From sequence record AP018399.1: a DNA stretch of 64,000 nucleotides, one strand, 5' to 3'. A program made the translations under genes and the position numbers. This document shows positions 12,270 through 63,052 of this stretch, in pieces. The notes below the pieces were generated by a model that had not been told where the DNA came from, did not search any database, and saw nothing but the letters and a program-made list of their open reading frames with translations. How positions within the stretch are numbered: the stretch's first letter is position 1; each line of letters begins with the position of its first letter.

Positions 12270-12814
12270 ATGGCATCTTCCACGCTGGCAGCGTCATAGA
12301 CCACGTTAGCCGGTTCACCAGCGAACACGACCACGCTGGGGCTGGAATAGATGGCGGTCATGCTGATGATGTAGCCGCGATACTGGAAGCCTGCACCAGC
12401 GGCCACATGGTTGCCTTGTGCATCCATGATGCCAAAGCGCTTGGAATTGAGGTTGTCGCTCATGGGCATATCAGTAGTCTCCCGAATCGTACATGCCGTA
12501 ATCTTCATCGGTTCCGAAGCCAGCGGACGCCAGTGCATAGCCGTCATCGGAATCGTCGCAGTCGATATCGTCGCAGTCGATATCTTCCTCACCTTCATCC
12601 TCATCGGACTCCGGATGCGGGACCGGCTCGCCAGTGTAAAACGGATTGGCGACCCACGTATCGGAATCATGCAACAGCCACGCCAGATGCGGGCACTCGC
12701 GGCCAACGTTGCGGGCGAACTCGTTCAGAGCATCATTGTTGGTTGCGTAGGTCATCGTTATGCTCCGTTGATTTGTGTGGTCATTATACACAAACAAATT
12801 CAACATGCAAGGGG

Positions 12815-12858
12815 TTGACGTGACCTAAATTATAGTGTAAAATGGATGGCAGGCCGGG
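12815..12858 (+). repeat. dispersed element, copy 4
   Basis: TTGACG-17-TAAAAT plus motif. Confidence 0.9.
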
Positions 12859-12916
12859 ACAGTATGCGGGGCCAACAAAAAGCCCGGATTGCTCCGGGCT
12901 TTCGATTCTGCTAGGG

Positions 12917-13427
12917 TCAGCGGTATTCGTTGGGGTACTTGGCGAGGATGGCGTACAGGCTGGCGAATTGGGCCGGAATCAGCACGGAATTGATGCGTTC
13001 CCATTCGGCCGGATTCTTGAGCAATTCCGCATCCGGGTTGGTGGTGAAGTGCGAGCCGCCCAGATGGTACAGGTCGGCAGTCTTGCGCAGCGTGTAGATG
13101 GTCTGCACAATCTCGCAGAACTTCCACAGGTCGCGGTCGTCGGTGATGGTCAGCGTATCGCCGAAATGCAGTTTGAGTTGGTCATACAGATTCTTATTCT
13201 GCATTTCCTTATTCTGCCAGTCCATGACGTGCAGGCTGTCCAGATGGTAATGGCAATCGCGATTGCCGAGGTAGCCGAAGCCCCAATACCAGTTGCAATC
13301 GAACGACGGGCGACGGAACAGGATGCCACGGCCATGCACGGAACCGAGACGGAAGTTTGCCGGGAACGCCGCAACCTTGGCATTCAGGTCATTGGAGAAG
13401 GCGTTAGGCTGGGTCCGCATCATCTTA
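12917..13427 (-). CDS. hypothetical phage protein
   Basis: ORF (CNWYWGFGY motif) with promoter and terminator; start approximate. Confidence 0.7.
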
Positions 13428-28636: not shown

Positions 28637-29275
28637 ATGAACCTCATTCCTGCCACTGTCACCGTTCCGGACTTCATCCTCAACAACGACCTGTTCCTGC
28701 GTGCGGCGAACTTCGCCCACAAGCACCATGATGCGGTCGGACAGAAGCGGGAAGGCTCTGGCGAACCCTACATCGTCCATCCGCTGGAAGTGGCCGGTCT
28801 GGCTCACGCGATGGGCCATGAGTTCGACTATCCGAGCGAATGGATTGAAGTGGCTGTCGTCGCGGCGCTGCTGCACGACACCATCGAAGACACCAAATGC
28901 ACCTACAACGAAATCGAAGCTGAGTTCGGGGCTGTCGTTCGCGACACCGTGTTCTGGCTGACGGACGTGGTGGAGAAGGCCAAGGGCAATCGCCGGGTGC
29001 GCAAGGAACTGGAACGTGTGCGTCTCATGGCTGCACCGGGCCGGGTCAAGTTCATCAAGTGCTGCGATATCATCGCCAATGCCCGCTGCATCCTCAAGGA
29101 CAAGCCGGGTTCGGCTCAGTTGTTCCTCACCGAGAAGATGAGCGTGCTGGATACGTTCGTCCACTACAACCGGATGCACAAGGGCACCGATAACATCGGC
29201 AAGTTGGATAAACAAATGCTTGCCAAGTGCCGTGCGGTTCTGGTAGAATTCATGGACACTATCAGCAAGCCCTAA
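28637..29275 (+). CDS. HD-domain (p)ppGpp hydrolase-like protein (small alarmone hydrolase)
   Basis: H..GQKREGSGEPYIVHP ... ALLHDTIEDT, the RelA/SpoT HD signature. Confidence 0.8.
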   Translation: MNLIPATVTVPDFILNNDLFLRAANFAHKHHDAVGQKREGSGEPYIVHPLEVAGLAHAMGHEFDYPSEWIEVAVVAALLHDTIEDTKCTYNEIEAEFGAVVRDTVFWLTDVVEKAKGNRRVRKELERVRLMAAPGRVKFIKCCDIIANARCILKDKPGSAQLFLTEKMSVLDTFVHYNRMHKGTDNIGKLDKQMLAKCRAVLVEFMDTISKP

Positions 29276-36245: not shown

Positions 36246-36560
36246 ATGAACGAAATCATCCAGAAGATGTTCCCCACTGGCACTCTCAATGGCCGTGGTG
36301 GTACCGAAGTGAACGGTCTGACCAAGGGCACGGTTCCGGCTGGTACCATTCTCAAGAGTGGACAGGACAAGTTCGACAACAAGGGCCGTCGTGAATTCTA
36401 CGCGGTCGAACTGGATGGGCATGTCGCGTACCTGCGAGTGTGCGAAGCATATCCGGGTAGTGGCTATGACGAATTCGCGGTTATACATCGCGTCGTCAAA
36501 GCCGAAGAGACGGAAGAAGTGAATGAAATTCTCAACACCGTTTCTCGTATGACCAGCTAA
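36246..36560 (+). CDS. hypothetical protein
   Basis: ORF with promoter. Confidence 0.65.
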   Translation: MNEIIQKMFPTGTLNGRGGTEVNGLTKGTVPAGTILKSGQDKFDNKGRREFYAVELDGHVAYLRVCEAYPGSGYDEFAVIHRVVKAEETEEVNEILNTVSRMTS

Positions 36561-37066: not shown

Positions 37067-37213
37067 ATTCTGATGGCGAAATAGGTAGACGCGGGGGTCT
37101 AGGCCAATATGGAGAAGGGAGCTAAACATTCCCTCTGCTGCTCATGGTCGGAAACTGCTGTGAAAGCGTTGCAGCAAAACGCTGACCGTGTGGGTTCGAC
37201 TCCCACTCAGAAA
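37067..37213 (+). ncRNA. tRNA-like RNA (Leu-like body) with extended anticodon arm
   Basis: Leu-type D loop GGCGAAATAGGTAGACGC, V arm and T arm; ~60 extra nt. Confidence 0.65.
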
Positions 37214-37224
37214 TTACTATATAA

Positions 37225-37620
37225 CAGTATGGTCGTAATCCCTTTAAAATGAAGGGCGTTCGGACGCGGGTTCGATTCCCGCCACGTCCACCACATGCAT
37301 CTTATAGCCAGAACTGAATCTGGTAAGAGGTAGTCAGCCACATTGAACCTTTCAGTAGAGCGCTGACCTAAGTCGCATGTAGTAACCCGCTTTAGGGTGC
37401 AAGTGATGGGCGTGCCAAGGTTTCGACGGGCGAAGATAGTGGAGAAGGCGACTAGCCAGAGTAGGCTCTAAAACTAAAACCTAAAGTAACTGCCAACGCA
37501 AATACTTTCGATTACGCACTAGCTGCCTAATCCCAAGCACATCCAGCACTTGGTCACCGAACGCTGGGCAATAGCAGTCCTTGGACTGTCTATTGTGAAA
37601 CATCTTCTGGTTCAGCCAGC
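37225..37620 (+). ncRNA. ssrA: circularly permuted (two-piece) tmRNA; tag ANANTFDYALAA
   Basis: Acceptor piece ending CACGTCCACCA (37293) precedes the 5' GGGCGTG (37408); G3.U70; tag 37492-37530; outer ends approximate. Confidence 0.85.
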
Positions 37621-37637
37621 CTAGGCAAAAGACGCAT

Positions 37638-37727: not shown

Positions 37728-37857
37728 CAGACCCCACTATGCTGGTCTGTGAAAAACAGTCGATATGGGTTAATATGGAAAACGCCTCTCATCTTTCAAA
37801 TAGGAGTTGACAATGAGCATTGTTTTTGCTACTATGTCGGCTTCTGTAACAAGCTAC

Positions 37858-38051
37858 GCCCTTGAGTAAGACAGTCAGGGAGTAAGCTCTTAATGTGAGC
37901 ATGGTCGCCCCCACCTTTTGATAGGCTAGCCGGGGAGAGGTTCGAATCCTCTAAGCACCGTTAGGCTGAGACGAAAGGACTACGTTGCGAAGCATTGCAC
38001 GCCAATTCCGGAAACGGCTGGTAGTGTTAGCATCCGACTACAAGGGCACCA
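37858..38051 (+). ncRNA. 194-nt tRNA-like RNA with ~88-nt insert between T arm and acceptor 3' strand
   Basis: GCCCTTG/CAAGGGC-ACCA; internal AGAGG-TTCGAAT-CCTCT. Confidence 0.65.
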
Positions 38052-38104
38052 AATTAGGTGTTGACAAACGAAGAAAGTATGGTAATATGTACTTCTTCAC
38101 CGGT

Positions 38105-38192
38105 AACCACTGACGATTGGCCCACCGCAAAAGGGCCGAAACAGAGAGACACAAGCGAGTTTACCTCCTTCCTCGCCGTCTCCTGTCTGGTT
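38105..38192 (+). ncRNA. hammerhead ribozyme-like RNA (type I), predicted cleavage after GUC at 38187
   Basis: CUGACGA, stem II GGCCC/GGGCC, GAAA, stem III ACAG/CTGT, stem I AACCA/TGGTT; extra UU after A9. Confidence 0.7.
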
Positions 38193-38214
38193 TGACAACT
38201 TGAGTGCGGAAACA

Positions 38215-38995
38215 ATCTCAAGGTGGAATAGCGTACAGTGATGTGCGTAAAGTGTGGCCCGCTCAGGCTGCGCACCATGCAAATGGCTCCATCAAACAAG
38301 CACCGACTCCGGGGCACGCCAAAAGTGTGTCACGGCCCTTGTGAAGAACCACGAGGGAACTTGGAAAAGGTGCCCGACAAGCTAGTCTTGGGACAACTGA
38401 GACAGTTTCCACCCGCAAAGTGGATTAGGGATGCAACACGGATACCAAGCACTAGTCAAGGTGTAGAACATAAGCATGAGGCTGCAACCAAGTGCGATGT
38501 TCAGTGAAGTGGGACTGTTTAACAGGCAGAACCGCATATACAATCCGAGTAGCCGCAAGCGAAAGGATACAGGGGCGTGTTGTATTTGGTACTTCAAAAG
38601 GGTATCGAGCAACGGCAACACACGTCCTGAGCAACAAAACAACTTCATAGGTTAATGAAATTAATTAAACGCAAAGTTGTTGCCGGTGCATGATGAAAGT
38701 GACGTAATGCTTGACACGCAAGTGAATCAAGCCATTCCGAGGCTCGCAAGGCAGAGGGGTGTTGTGGGAAAGTCGCACGTTTGGGGTCGAACCCTTTACT
38801 GCTCGCAAGGCAGGCGGTAGACAGAACCATGAATAGTCATGCACGACAGTGGAAATGCCACCACTTTAATCTAGGCCGTCATGGTTGCTACTCACATGAG
38901 TGAGTGGATAACGGTAGAAACTTCGCTCGCAAGCGGAGTATAATGACCGGAAAGGTAACCAATCAATGCTGTAATCTCAGGCAGGCTTTTCCAAT
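38215..38995 (+). ncRNA. giant ornate ncRNA, GOLLD-like (~780 nt)
   Basis: No credible ORF, many GNRA hairpins, tRNA context, GGCGTGTTGTA..CAAAAGG and GTAATCTCAG motifs recalled from GOLLD. Confidence 0.6.
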
Positions 38996-39052: not shown

Positions 39053-39138
39053 GCGGGTGTGGCCGAGTGGTCGATGGCACTAGTCTTCCAAACTAGACTC
39101 AGAAATGGGCGCGAGTTCGAATCTCGCCACCCGCTCCA
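39053..39138 (+). tRNA. tRNA-Gly(UCC) with long variable arm
   Basis: Loop CTTCCAA, U73, V arm CTCAGAAATGGG. Confidence 0.85.
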
Positions 39139-56775: not shown

Positions 56776-58083
56776 TCACTCGGAAGCCGCAGATTCCAAG
56801 TCAACCACGTCCTTGTCCAGCAGCGCAGTTTCGTGCGCGAGGAACAGCGGAGACTTCGCCTTCGTGATGGTCGGCGACACCGCTTCGCACTCCACGATAC
56901 GCAGGCATACGCCTTCGTCCACGGTCTTTGCGTCGCTCAGCGGAACCGGCATATCGGTGAAAGCCGAATGGCCGCTCATCACGTCGTCGTAGTAGCGACG
57001 GTCCATCAGGGCTTCGATACGGCCAGAAGCTACCAAGTCCGCCTTACGACCACGGAAGAATTCCGGGGTGTGCATGATGCCGTTGTCCACACAGAAGCGC
57101 TTCACCGCATCCCACGACAGTTCCACATGACGGCCGTCGTTGGTGATGACCATGATACGATAGACGTACAGGTCAGCACGGCCCTGCGGCACGTTGTAGG
57201 TGTAACCCGACTGGATAGCCGCACCGTCGCCGGTCCAGCCAATCAGTTCCGCGTACAGGATGAAGTTCTGCGGCACGATGGCATCGTACTTCTTGCCTTC
57301 GGTAGACCAGATATCGTCCTTGTAGAAGTGGACCTGATTCGGGTTGTTCGCATCCTTGATGACGCGACGCGAACCGTACACATGGTCATACGCCGTGGTC
57401 TGCACCTTGACGCCGAAGAACTTGGCAACCTTTTCCTTCCACGTCGGCTGCACGTTCACCGGCACATGGCCGATACGGATAGACGTACCGTGGAGCTTCT
57501 GGGTCACGATGACTTCGGCATCATCCGGAATCGAATCCAACTGGCGGAACCAGTGGGAAGTCGCCAGATGTTCCGGCAGGAACTTGTTGTCGATACGCTT
57601 GAACTTCTCTTCCTTGAAGGAAGTCTTCTGCACACCGGCCTTGCGAGCCACTTCGTACTTGCGGCAGATTTCGATGCCCGCGATTTCATCGAAGGTATCG
57701 CCTTCCTTGAGCTTCGACACGTCGATGCCCGTGAAGGCCAGCGAATCCACCGGCATCACCAGCGCATCCGAACGATGACCACGGAACTTGATTGCACGCA
57801 CGCGACGGTTCGCTTCGATGTAACCCTTCTTTTCCGGGTCAGCATTCAGCGTGGTATCGCGGTACAGGTTGTTCGCCTTGGTGTATTCGTCGGACAACTG
57901 CGTCTCTGCCGTGAACACCAGCACGAGGTCGCCGACCTTCGTATCCTTGCCCACGATGGCCTGATAGCCGAACAGCGGAGCGCCAACCACGTTATCGCAG
58001 TTCGGCAGCACGTTGATGTGGCGAATCGTCGTGACCACAGCCACGTAGTTCGCGTTCTTCGGTTCCTTGAAAGTCAGAGACAT
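56776..58083 (-). CDS. ATP-dependent RNA ligase with N-terminal OB-like domain (DRB0094-like)
   Basis: Motif I TQKLHGT, motif IV DEGVC and motif V KAKS. Confidence 0.8.
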   Translation of the reverse strand: MSLTFKEPKNANYVAVVTTIRHINVLPNCDNVVGAPLFGYQAIVGKDTKVGDLVLVFTAETQLSDEYTKANNLYRDTTLNADPEKKGYIEANRRVRAIKFRGHRSDALVMPVDSLAFTGIDVSKLKEGDTFDEIAGIEICRKYEVARKAGVQKTSFKEEKFKRIDNKFLPEHLATSHWFRQLDSIPDDAEVIVTQKLHGTSIRIGHVPVNVQPTWKEKVAKFFGVKVQTTAYDHVYGSRRVIKDANNPNQVHFYKDDIWSTEGKKYDAIVPQNFILYAELIGWTGDGAAIQSGYTYNVPQGRADLYVYRIMVITNDGRHVELSWDAVKRFCVDNGIMHTPEFFRGRKADLVASGRIEALMDRRYYDDVMSGHSAFTDMPVPLSDAKTVDEGVCLRIVECEAVSPTITKAKSPLFLAHETALLDKDVVDLESAASE

Positions 58084-62302: not shown

Positions 62303-63052
62303 TTAAACCAACGCAACTTCGGCCTCCGGCTCTTCTTGTTTTTCTATGTGCAAGCCCACGTACTCACGCATTTGCGAGAAGACAGGGATGTGTACATCAA
62401 CCTGCTTCGAAATGCTATTGTAGCACAGACCACGCTTTTTGTGAATCGCAATGTCGTTCCAGTTCACCGGAACATCCATCTGCATCAGCAAGTCCTGAAC
62501 CTGCTGATTGTTCAGGCCATGACACTTCTTATGGCCTAGGTAGTGCGTAGCCACAGAGCGGATACTGTTACGCACAGCATCGTTCTGTCGCCAAATGAAA
62601 TAATTTACAATCTCATCCTTCGGCAGCGAGAAGACACGCGAATCGAAGAATGCCAGCGGCTTGTCTTCGAAGGCATCAGCAGCCAGCTTGTTGAACATGC
62701 CAGTCGCCAGAGACGCGGACACGCTCACCATCTTCTGGACATTGCCATCGAACCATGCATCGGTCGTCAGGTTGTCGTAGTCACGTAGCAGGATGGAGAT
62801 TTCATCCGACTGGCAGTAAGCGAAAACTGCACCTTGGATATTCTCACATAGAAACTTCATGGTGTTCGCCATGATAGCGATGAACGTATCATCGTGGGGA
62901 CGGTCAAGTCCCTTCGTCCATGTGTGGAATGCCTTACCGTCCAGACGGATGATTGCGGGCGTGCGTCGCATCAACTTGATACGATTCACGTCCTCATACT
63001 TCTTCATGCGGTCGCCGAGACTATCGCCGCCCTTGGGTGCAGATTTCGCCAT
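62303..63052 (-). CDS. tRNA-His guanylyltransferase (Thg1)-like protein
   Basis: RMKKYE, IRLDGKAFHTWT, QSDEISI, FDSRVF, YFIWRQNDA. Confidence 0.9.
   Translation of the reverse strand: MAKSAPKGGDSLGDRMKKYEDVNRIKLMRRTPAIIRLDGKAFHTWTKGLDRPHDDTFIAIMANTMKFLCENIQGAVFAYCQSDEISILLRDYDNLTTDAWFDGNVQKMVSVSASLATGMFNKLAADAFEDKPLAFFDSRVFSLPKDEIVNYFIWRQNDAVRNSIRSVATHYLGHKKCHGLNNQQVQDLLMQMDVPVNWNDIAIHKKRGLCYNSISKQVDVHIPVFSQMREYVGLHIEKQEEPEAEVALV

Follow-up and report, generated by a model that had tools for sequence, protein, structure and literature searches.

The stretch of DNA analyzed here, a window of 64,000 nt, comprises bases 1-64000 of the Xanthomonas citri jumbo phage XacN1 (AP018399.1, a single assembly) with identical coordinates. 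It lies inside the 66-kb direct terminal repeat, which carries tRNA genes (PMC5852040), and the hammerhead-GOLLD locus described below is therefore present twice in each XacN1 genome. Rfam models recognize ~30 tRNAs in the window, and the terminal repeat as a whole holds 56. The annotation of AP018399.1 is blank from ORF088 (36246-36560) to tRNA-Gly (39053), and GOLLD, tmRNA and ribozymes go unmentioned in the XacN1 genome paper (PMC5852040). Within this blank interval a permuted two-piece tmRNA occupies 37177-37621 (37177-37596 in the Rfam match), with the tag peptide ANANTFDYALAA and a position ~500 nt upstream of the GOLLD promoter; it too is missing from the GenBank record, and the order tmRNA then GOLLD recurs in the metagenome contig L203. 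A promoter-like site (TTGACA, 17 nt, TACTAT) was also seen at 37807-37835, and past it, at 37900-37960, lies the T-arm-like stretch GGTTCGAATCC, where neither ARAGORN nor Rfam calls a tRNA. The same interval of L203, between tmRNA and hammerhead, contains a weak tRNA match (41.5 bits), and the T-arm-like stretch of XacN1 may be a decayed tRNA. Elsewhere in the window, ORF077 (28637-29275, plus strand) is annotated as "GTP pyrophosphokinase" but matches HD domains only (PF13328, PF01966); this domain content suggests a small alarmone hydrolase more than a synthetase.

Transcription of the region of interest is predicted to begin at a sigma-70-like promoter on the plus strand at 38061-38088 (TTGACA, 16 nt, TAATAT), both hexamers of which are kept in L203 and in Stenotrophomonas phage CM1 while the spacer diverges. 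The predicted start falls at ~38095-38099, and the hammerhead begins ~10 nt later, at the distance from the start given in a preliminary description of this DNA. Downstream, on the same strand, lies the large RNA which that description had called GOLLD-like, an assignment borne out by an Rfam RF02032 match to the conserved 3' domain at 38570-38983 (227.3 bits, E 4e-63, threshold 150); corresponding scores are 232 bits in L203 and 218 bits in CM1. The 5' domain was delimited at 38193-38569 by alignment with L203, CM1 and Xanthomonas phage X1. A tRNA-Gly gene (39053-39138, plus strand) follows 69 nt after GOLLD, and neither a terminator nor a second ribozyme was found on the 3' side of GOLLD up to this tRNA.

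Direct reading of 38105-38192 on the plus strand recovers every core element of a hammerhead ribozyme in the right order, as the preliminary description had it. The 5' strand of stem I, AACCA (38105-38109), pairs with UGGUU (38188-38192) and is followed by the core heptanucleotide CUGACGA (38110-38116; C3 U4 G5 A6 N7 G8 A9, with C at N7). Two inserted U residues (38117-38118), the one deviation recorded beforehand, separate A9 from stem II, in which GGCCC (38119-38123) pairs with GGGCC (38133-38137) to close the 9-nt loop II ACCGCAAAA. The second core segment, GAAA (38138-38141; G12 A13 A14 A15.1), leads into stem III (38141-38149 with 38179-38186, A38145 being bulged), which is extended by a distal hairpin, GCGAG/CUCGC (38155-38159/38172-38176). 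The GUC triplet lies at 38185-38187, with C17 at 38187, so that by the hammerhead consensus cleavage is predicted at 38187/38188, and UGGUU would form the 5' overhang of the mature RNA once cut. Positions C3 to A9, G12, A13 and A14, the A15.1-U16.1 pair (U38186) and H17 (C38187, not G) all follow the hammerhead consensus; owing to the inserted UU, the G10.1-C11.1 pair does not come directly after A9.

The MFE fold of 38100-38197 is the three-way junction, with stem I as the open helix, although its folding z-score is only -1.5. Stem I has just 5 bp and is missing from the MFE structures of L203, CM1 and X1 when each is folded alone. A relaxed type I descriptor (0-2 inserted nt, at least 3 pairs in stem II, at least 4 in stems I and III) has exactly one match on both strands of the 64-kb window, against a mean of 0.025 matches per window across 200 dinucleotide shuffles, none of which (0/200) yielded a match equal in quality to the real one. 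The hammerhead motif is real and not a product of chance. Rfam hammerhead models give no match in XacN1 even at E<=10, but L203, whose orthologue is canonical, and seven other phage loci bearing textbook type I hammerheads escape them as well, and the null result in XacN1 is for this reason uninformative; the models were concluded to be blind to this hammerhead subclass. As a separate observation, the leader segment ACCGG (38099-38103) can pair with CUGGU (38187-38191) across the cleavage site, a pairing that replaces stem I in an MFE structure of longer context and that may act as a competing fold modulating cleavage.

Relatives of the locus were recovered in three ways. BLAST against phage genomes located the whole promoter-to-GOLLD segment, at 74% identity, in Stenotrophomonas phages CM1 and RAS14; a metagenome pattern scan yielded L203 (JACCDR010178849.1), which is closely related and syntenic and shares the two-piece tmRNA, the promoter and GOLLD; and when GOLLD 5' domains were aligned, Xanthomonas phages X1 and BUDD proved to have a hammerhead in the homologous position. 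L203 is the closest relative of XacN1, with 94% identity over the aligned 101-nt hammerhead region. In all six sequences the predicted cut follows GUC and directly precedes UGGUU or UGGUC. The core is invariant among relatives except at N7 (C, U or A), GAAA being found in every one, and GUC is likewise kept apart from GUU in two distant metagenomic contigs (L055 and L006) considered further below. The number of residues between A9 and G10.1 varies: L203 (CUGAUGA-GGCCC..GGGCC-GAAA) and X1 and BUDD (CUGAAGA-GU(C)GCC..GGCAC-GAAA) have none, CM1 and RAS14 have a single U (CUGAUGA-U-GCCCA..UGGGC-GAAA), and XacN1 alone has UU (CUGACGA-UU-GGCCC..GGGCC-GAAA).

Substitutions preserve pairing in all three helices. 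Stem I, AACCA/UGGUU in XacN1, has a C to U change giving a G-U pair in L203 and an A-U to G-C exchange in X1 (GACCA/UGGUC), and is replaced by a wholly different paired sequence, ACUCC/GGAGU, in a distant group of Erwinia phages. Stem II of CM1 (GCCCA/UGGGC) differs from that of XacN1 by two compensatory pairs, and that of X1 and BUDD consists of G-C, U-A, a bulge, G-C, C-G and C-G. In stem III the series A-U/C-G/A-U/G-C becomes A-U/C-G/G-C/U-A in X1 and BUDD, with A-U exchanged for G-C and G-C for U-A, and L203 has GCGCG/CGCGC where the distal hairpin of XacN1 reads GCGAG/CUCGC. From an unedited MAFFT alignment of five sequences RNAalifold obtained the three-way junction, in which both partners differ at five pairs. 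MAFFT places stem II of CM1 and of X1 in the wrong register; register-checked pair tables were used besides RNAalifold, and the apparently broken stem II pairs of X1 and BUDD in that alignment were rejected as alignment artefacts. A covariance model built from XacN1 and L203 scored CM1 and RAS14 at 61 bits and X1 and BUDD at only ~10 bits; it is too narrow and mis-places the Erwinia group, and pair counts were taken from RNAalifold and the checked tables instead. Two scans of viral contigs for XacN1-type junction sequences returned chance matches only. Conservation and covariation in five further phage and metagenome lineages, a comparison that extends to only ~5 independent lineages, support the reading of 38105-38192 as a hammerhead.

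A further element lies outside the minimal motif. In all nine family sequences, 4-6 nt located just 5' of stem I, at a distance of 0-1 nt, are complementary to the start of loop II, with loop-shuffle P values of 0.003-0.12 per sequence. In XacN1 the leader strand CGGU (38101-38104) abuts stem I and its partner ACCG occupies 38124-38127 in loop II; L203 has the same pair, and the leader and loop strands read AUCGG/CCGAU in CM1, CGUCC/GGACG in X1, ACGUCG/CGACGU in L055, CGUCG/CGACG in Erwinia phage Deimos-Minion and ACGUCU/AGACGU in Erwinia phage AH06. The helix is rebuilt in CM1 relative to XacN1, and AH06 and L055 differ by one true compensatory change. About 40% of natural hammerheads, spread over all three types, have a pseudoknot between stem I and loop II, which fast cleavage at physiological Mg2+ requires (PMC3088659). 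The presence of this established tertiary contact in nine of nine sequences, together with its covariation, makes it very probable that the family is a bona fide hammerhead.

Whether the XacN1 copy itself works depends on the UU insertion, which sits at the junction forming the A9/G10.1 metal site. The main alternative to an active ribozyme is that the family is a true one but its XacN1 member is a recently disabled relic, the UU displacing A9 from G10.1 or locking G12 and A13 into an extended stem II, in which case XacN1 GOLLD would retain a ~90-nt leader and a triphosphate end. Consistent with this, the UU is unique to XacN1 and absent from L203, and the MFE fold pairs it with A13 and G12, a competing inactive form that the nearest-neighbour model makes ~1.5 kcal/mol more stable; the 94% identity of the two sequences would allow a loss recent enough for no further decay to have followed, and some natural core insertions strongly impair hammerheads (PMC3088659). 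Against it, the same junction tolerates an extra nucleotide in nature: in the CChMVd (+) hammerhead an A10 naturally separates A9 from G10.1 and costs no more than a moderate part of the rate, and U in place of A10 raises the rate 3-4 fold (PMC3705267, PMC1636495). The CM1/RAS14 lineage independently has a U at this spot, seen in two independent isolates and in keeping with the CChMVd precedent, which suggests that the site is permissive, and all other core bases, the stems and the pseudoknot are intact in XacN1. The literature yielded precedent for one nucleotide inserted at A9/G10.1 and none for two. The UU probably weakens the XacN1 ribozyme rather than abolishing its activity; an active XacN1 copy, perhaps a slower one, is likely, and a relic rather unlikely.

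The position of the hammerhead relative to GOLLD bears on what cleavage would achieve. Bases 38193-38201 (UGACAACUU) can pair with 38674-38682 (AAGUUGUUG), which lie immediately ahead of the main 3'-domain helix, and this long-range helix is kept in CM1 (with G-U replaced by G-C), in X1 and BUDD (UAGCAAC/GUUGUUG) and in L203. The predicted cut lies 5 nt before the helix, which closes the GOLLD 5' domain, and the ribozyme is thus external to GOLLD. The predicted product, 38188-38983, would be ~796 nt long, in agreement with the reported GOLLD size of ~800 nt (bioRxiv 10.1101/2024.12.08.627333). The earlier proposal that the hammerhead is placed to cut the GOLLD leader gains support from this spacing and from the covariation in five further lineages. 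The new 5' end is also complementary over 8 bp to 38727-38734, but this pairing was rejected, as that segment already forms part of a local hairpin conserved in the 3' domain. In X1 a promoter scan detected no promoter-like site from tRNA-Val to the hammerhead, which suggests that the ribozyme is tied to the 5' end of GOLLD and not to the transcription start.

The association is confined to one clade. Among 119 other GOLLD loci in IMG/VR, of which 91 extend 1.2 kb or more upstream, none has a hammerhead within 1.5 kb upstream; matches to a relaxed U3-A8 core upstream of other GOLLDs were rejected as AT-rich junk. Since these 119 loci are without one, the hammerhead is an add-on specific to the Xanthomonadaceae-phage clade and not a feature of the GOLLD family. 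The same comparison weighs on the idea that the three-way junction is a non-catalytic GOLLD leader resembling a hammerhead, serving as a folding chaperone, a protein-binding site or a transcription attenuator. Such a leader would fit the failure of the Rfam hammerhead models to match and the variability of GOLLD 5' regions (bioRxiv 10.1101/2024.12.08.627333), but the 119 other loci have no such junction, the core positions follow the hammerhead consensus and are invariant across lineages with completely different stems, many phage contigs without GOLLD share this core, stem II and pseudoknot design, and a terminator-like site is absent; this explanation is very improbable.

The reading favored here, and considered likely on the comparative evidence, is that 38105-38192 is the XacN1 copy of a conserved type I hammerhead which acts as a self-removing maker of the GOLLD 5' end and leaves a 5'-OH. 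In the GOLLD transcript the hammerhead would take up the first ~90 nt. Transcription would first yield the leader strand and the 5' side of stem I, then the core, stem II, whose loop would pair back to the leader as the pseudoknot, and stem III, with the GUC site and the 3' strand of stem I emerging last. Given this order, folding and cutting between C38187 and U38188 could be completed ahead of GOLLD synthesis. The cut would take off the promoter-proximal leader, that is, the ribozyme itself with its triphosphate end, as a ~90-nt RNA bearing a 2',3'-cyclic phosphate. GOLLD would then begin at a fixed 5'-OH with 5 nt of overhang (UGGUU), directly followed by the closing helix of the 5' domain. 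On its 3' side the precursor would be bounded by tRNA-Gly, presumably through RNase P. Unlike the motif, its conservation and covariation and its place before GOLLD, catalysis, product ends and purpose are inferred; the product ends would follow from hammerhead chemistry if the ribozyme is active. One possible purpose is a defined end that stays the same wherever transcription starts and even if the upstream tRNA/tmRNA array is read through; another is escape of the 5'-OH end from 5'-end-dependent decay. RNA with a 5'-OH end is a poor substrate for 5'-end-dependent decay by RNase E and RNase J.

Elsewhere in the window, an ATP-dependent RNA ligase (PF09414, PHA02142-like OB fold) is encoded by ORF121 (56776-58083, minus strand) and a Thg1-family tRNA-His guanylyltransferase by ORF126 (62303-63052, minus strand); together with the ~30 tRNAs of the window and the 56 of the repeat they suggest that the terminal repeat carries a toolkit for the repair and maturation of RNA. 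Phage RNA ligases are usually explained by tRNA repair. The RNA ligase mentioned in the preliminary description is thus present, but it is of a type unable to join hammerhead ends directly, and the cyclic-phosphate REC-like protein named alongside it was not identified among the 18 larger ORFs scanned. It is highly improbable that the 5'-OH product is phosphorylated and ligated by the phage RNA ligase, with GOLLD circularised or joined as a result: the ligase and the Thg1-like enzyme do lie in the same terminal repeat, but PF09414 ligases require 3'-OH and 5'-phosphate ends, no kinase/phosphatase, RtcB, 2H phosphoesterase or other cyclic phosphodiesterase was found among those 18 ORFs, and GOLLD lacks a second ribozyme on its 3' side, so that a ligation role is unsupported.

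Hammerheads of the same design extend beyond the Xanthomonadaceae phages. A distant group, with a stem III of ~106-110 nt, comprises two metagenomic contigs (L055, identical with L204, from a 287-kb contig; and L006, identical with L231) and 17 phage-collection records of Erwinia jumbo phages, including Ea35-70, Deimos-Minion and AH06; three of these 17 records, all of genus Agricanvirus, were examined. Directly downstream of the same-style hammerhead in the Erwinia phages and the two contigs is a conserved stretch of ~500 nt, at 751-1262 in Deimos-Minion (L235), 762-1277 in AH06 (L236), 12763-13331 on the minus strand of L006 and 985-1552 in L204. It has almost no annotation, contains long invariant blocks and 11 compensatory pairs in RNAalifold, and finds no match in Rfam at E<=5; the RNA appears to be unnamed so far. 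Its final helix (ACUCCU/AGGAGU) would cover the ribosome-binding site of the gene that follows, and the stretch could therefore be a long structured 5' UTR and not a free RNA.

Type I hammerheads with a stem II of the form GU(N)GCC/GGCAC were also seen in the IMG/VR contigs L244, L251, L257, L261, L243, L247, L250, L264, L274 and L288, five of which (L244, L251, L257, L261 and L288) have the leader/loop II pseudoknot as well. None of them was detected by Rfam hammerhead models at E<=1. In L244 a permuted tmRNA and tRNAs lie just upstream of the hammerhead, as in XacN1, and L243 contains several twister-P1 matches below threshold.

These occurrences allow a more general, and tentative, proposal: the type I design with a leader pseudoknot, its stem II being GU(N)GCC/GGCAC or a variant, might be a general "start-of-RNA" mark in jumbo phages of plant-associated Gammaproteobacteria, one that gives large structured phage RNAs a fixed 5'-OH end. 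The cases would be GOLLD in Xanthomonas and Stenotrophomonas phages and the ~500-nt RNA in Erwinia Agricanvirus phages. Were this so, the 5'-OH end itself, beyond mere trimming, may matter for the stability of GOLLD or for assembly of the cage, GOLLD being known to form a 14-mer nanocage (bioRxiv 10.1101/2024.12.08.627333), and the presence of zero, one or two U residues at A9/G10.1 would tune the rate of cleavage. The same residues offer ribozyme enzymology a natural series of zero, one and two inserted U at a single junction. GOLLD is among the largest non-coding RNAs of bacteria and phages, and in this clade the ribozyme would provide a natural definition of its mature 5' end; GOLLD would here be processed from a precursor, flanked by a hammerhead and a tRNA, and is predicted to have a 5'-OH terminus.

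Hammerheads in phages, the type I topology and stem I/II pseudoknots are already known; the searchable literature yielded no hammerhead at the head of a GOLLD RNA, and a paper that names both treats them apart; what is new is the informative GOLLD context together with the unusual two-base core insertion of the XacN1 copy. The nearest relatives are type I hammerheads with a stem I/loop II pseudoknot (Perreault et al., 2011, PMC3088659), which share the core, the three-helix junction and the open stem I, are frequent in phage and prophage DNA, and likewise use the pseudoknot to hold stems I and II parallel. In those ribozymes the pseudoknot strand is a loop or bulge in stem I, whereas in the XacN1 family it is the 5' leader of the transcript; the XacN1 family also differs in standing at the very start of a transcript, before GOLLD RNA, and the XacN1 copy in having two extra U residues in the core. 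The CChMVd (+) hammerhead is active with an insertion at the same core junction, but it has one inserted nucleotide in place of two and is a viroid ribozyme of type III associated with rolling-circle replication (De la Pena and Flores, 2001, via PMC3705267 and PMC1636495). On the side of the downstream RNA, the GOLLD variant env-38 studied by cryo-EM lies downstream of tRNA-Met (bioRxiv 10.1101/2024.12.08.627333). The GOLLD of XacN1 resembles such tRNA-flanked GOLLD RNAs in being a large phage RNA in a tRNA array that would be released from a longer precursor by processing. Flanking tRNAs were reportedly noted for GOLLD RNAs by Weinberg and colleagues in 2009. In the XacN1 clade, in contrast to other GOLLDs, the 5' end would be made by a built-in ribozyme and not by tRNA-processing enzymes. 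Engineered 5' hammerhead cassettes and ribozyme insulators such as RiboJ place a self-removing ribozyme between promoter and payload and thereby create a defined 5'-OH end that is independent of the promoter. Those devices are synthetic, and the XacN1 hammerhead would be their natural counterpart for a non-coding RNA.
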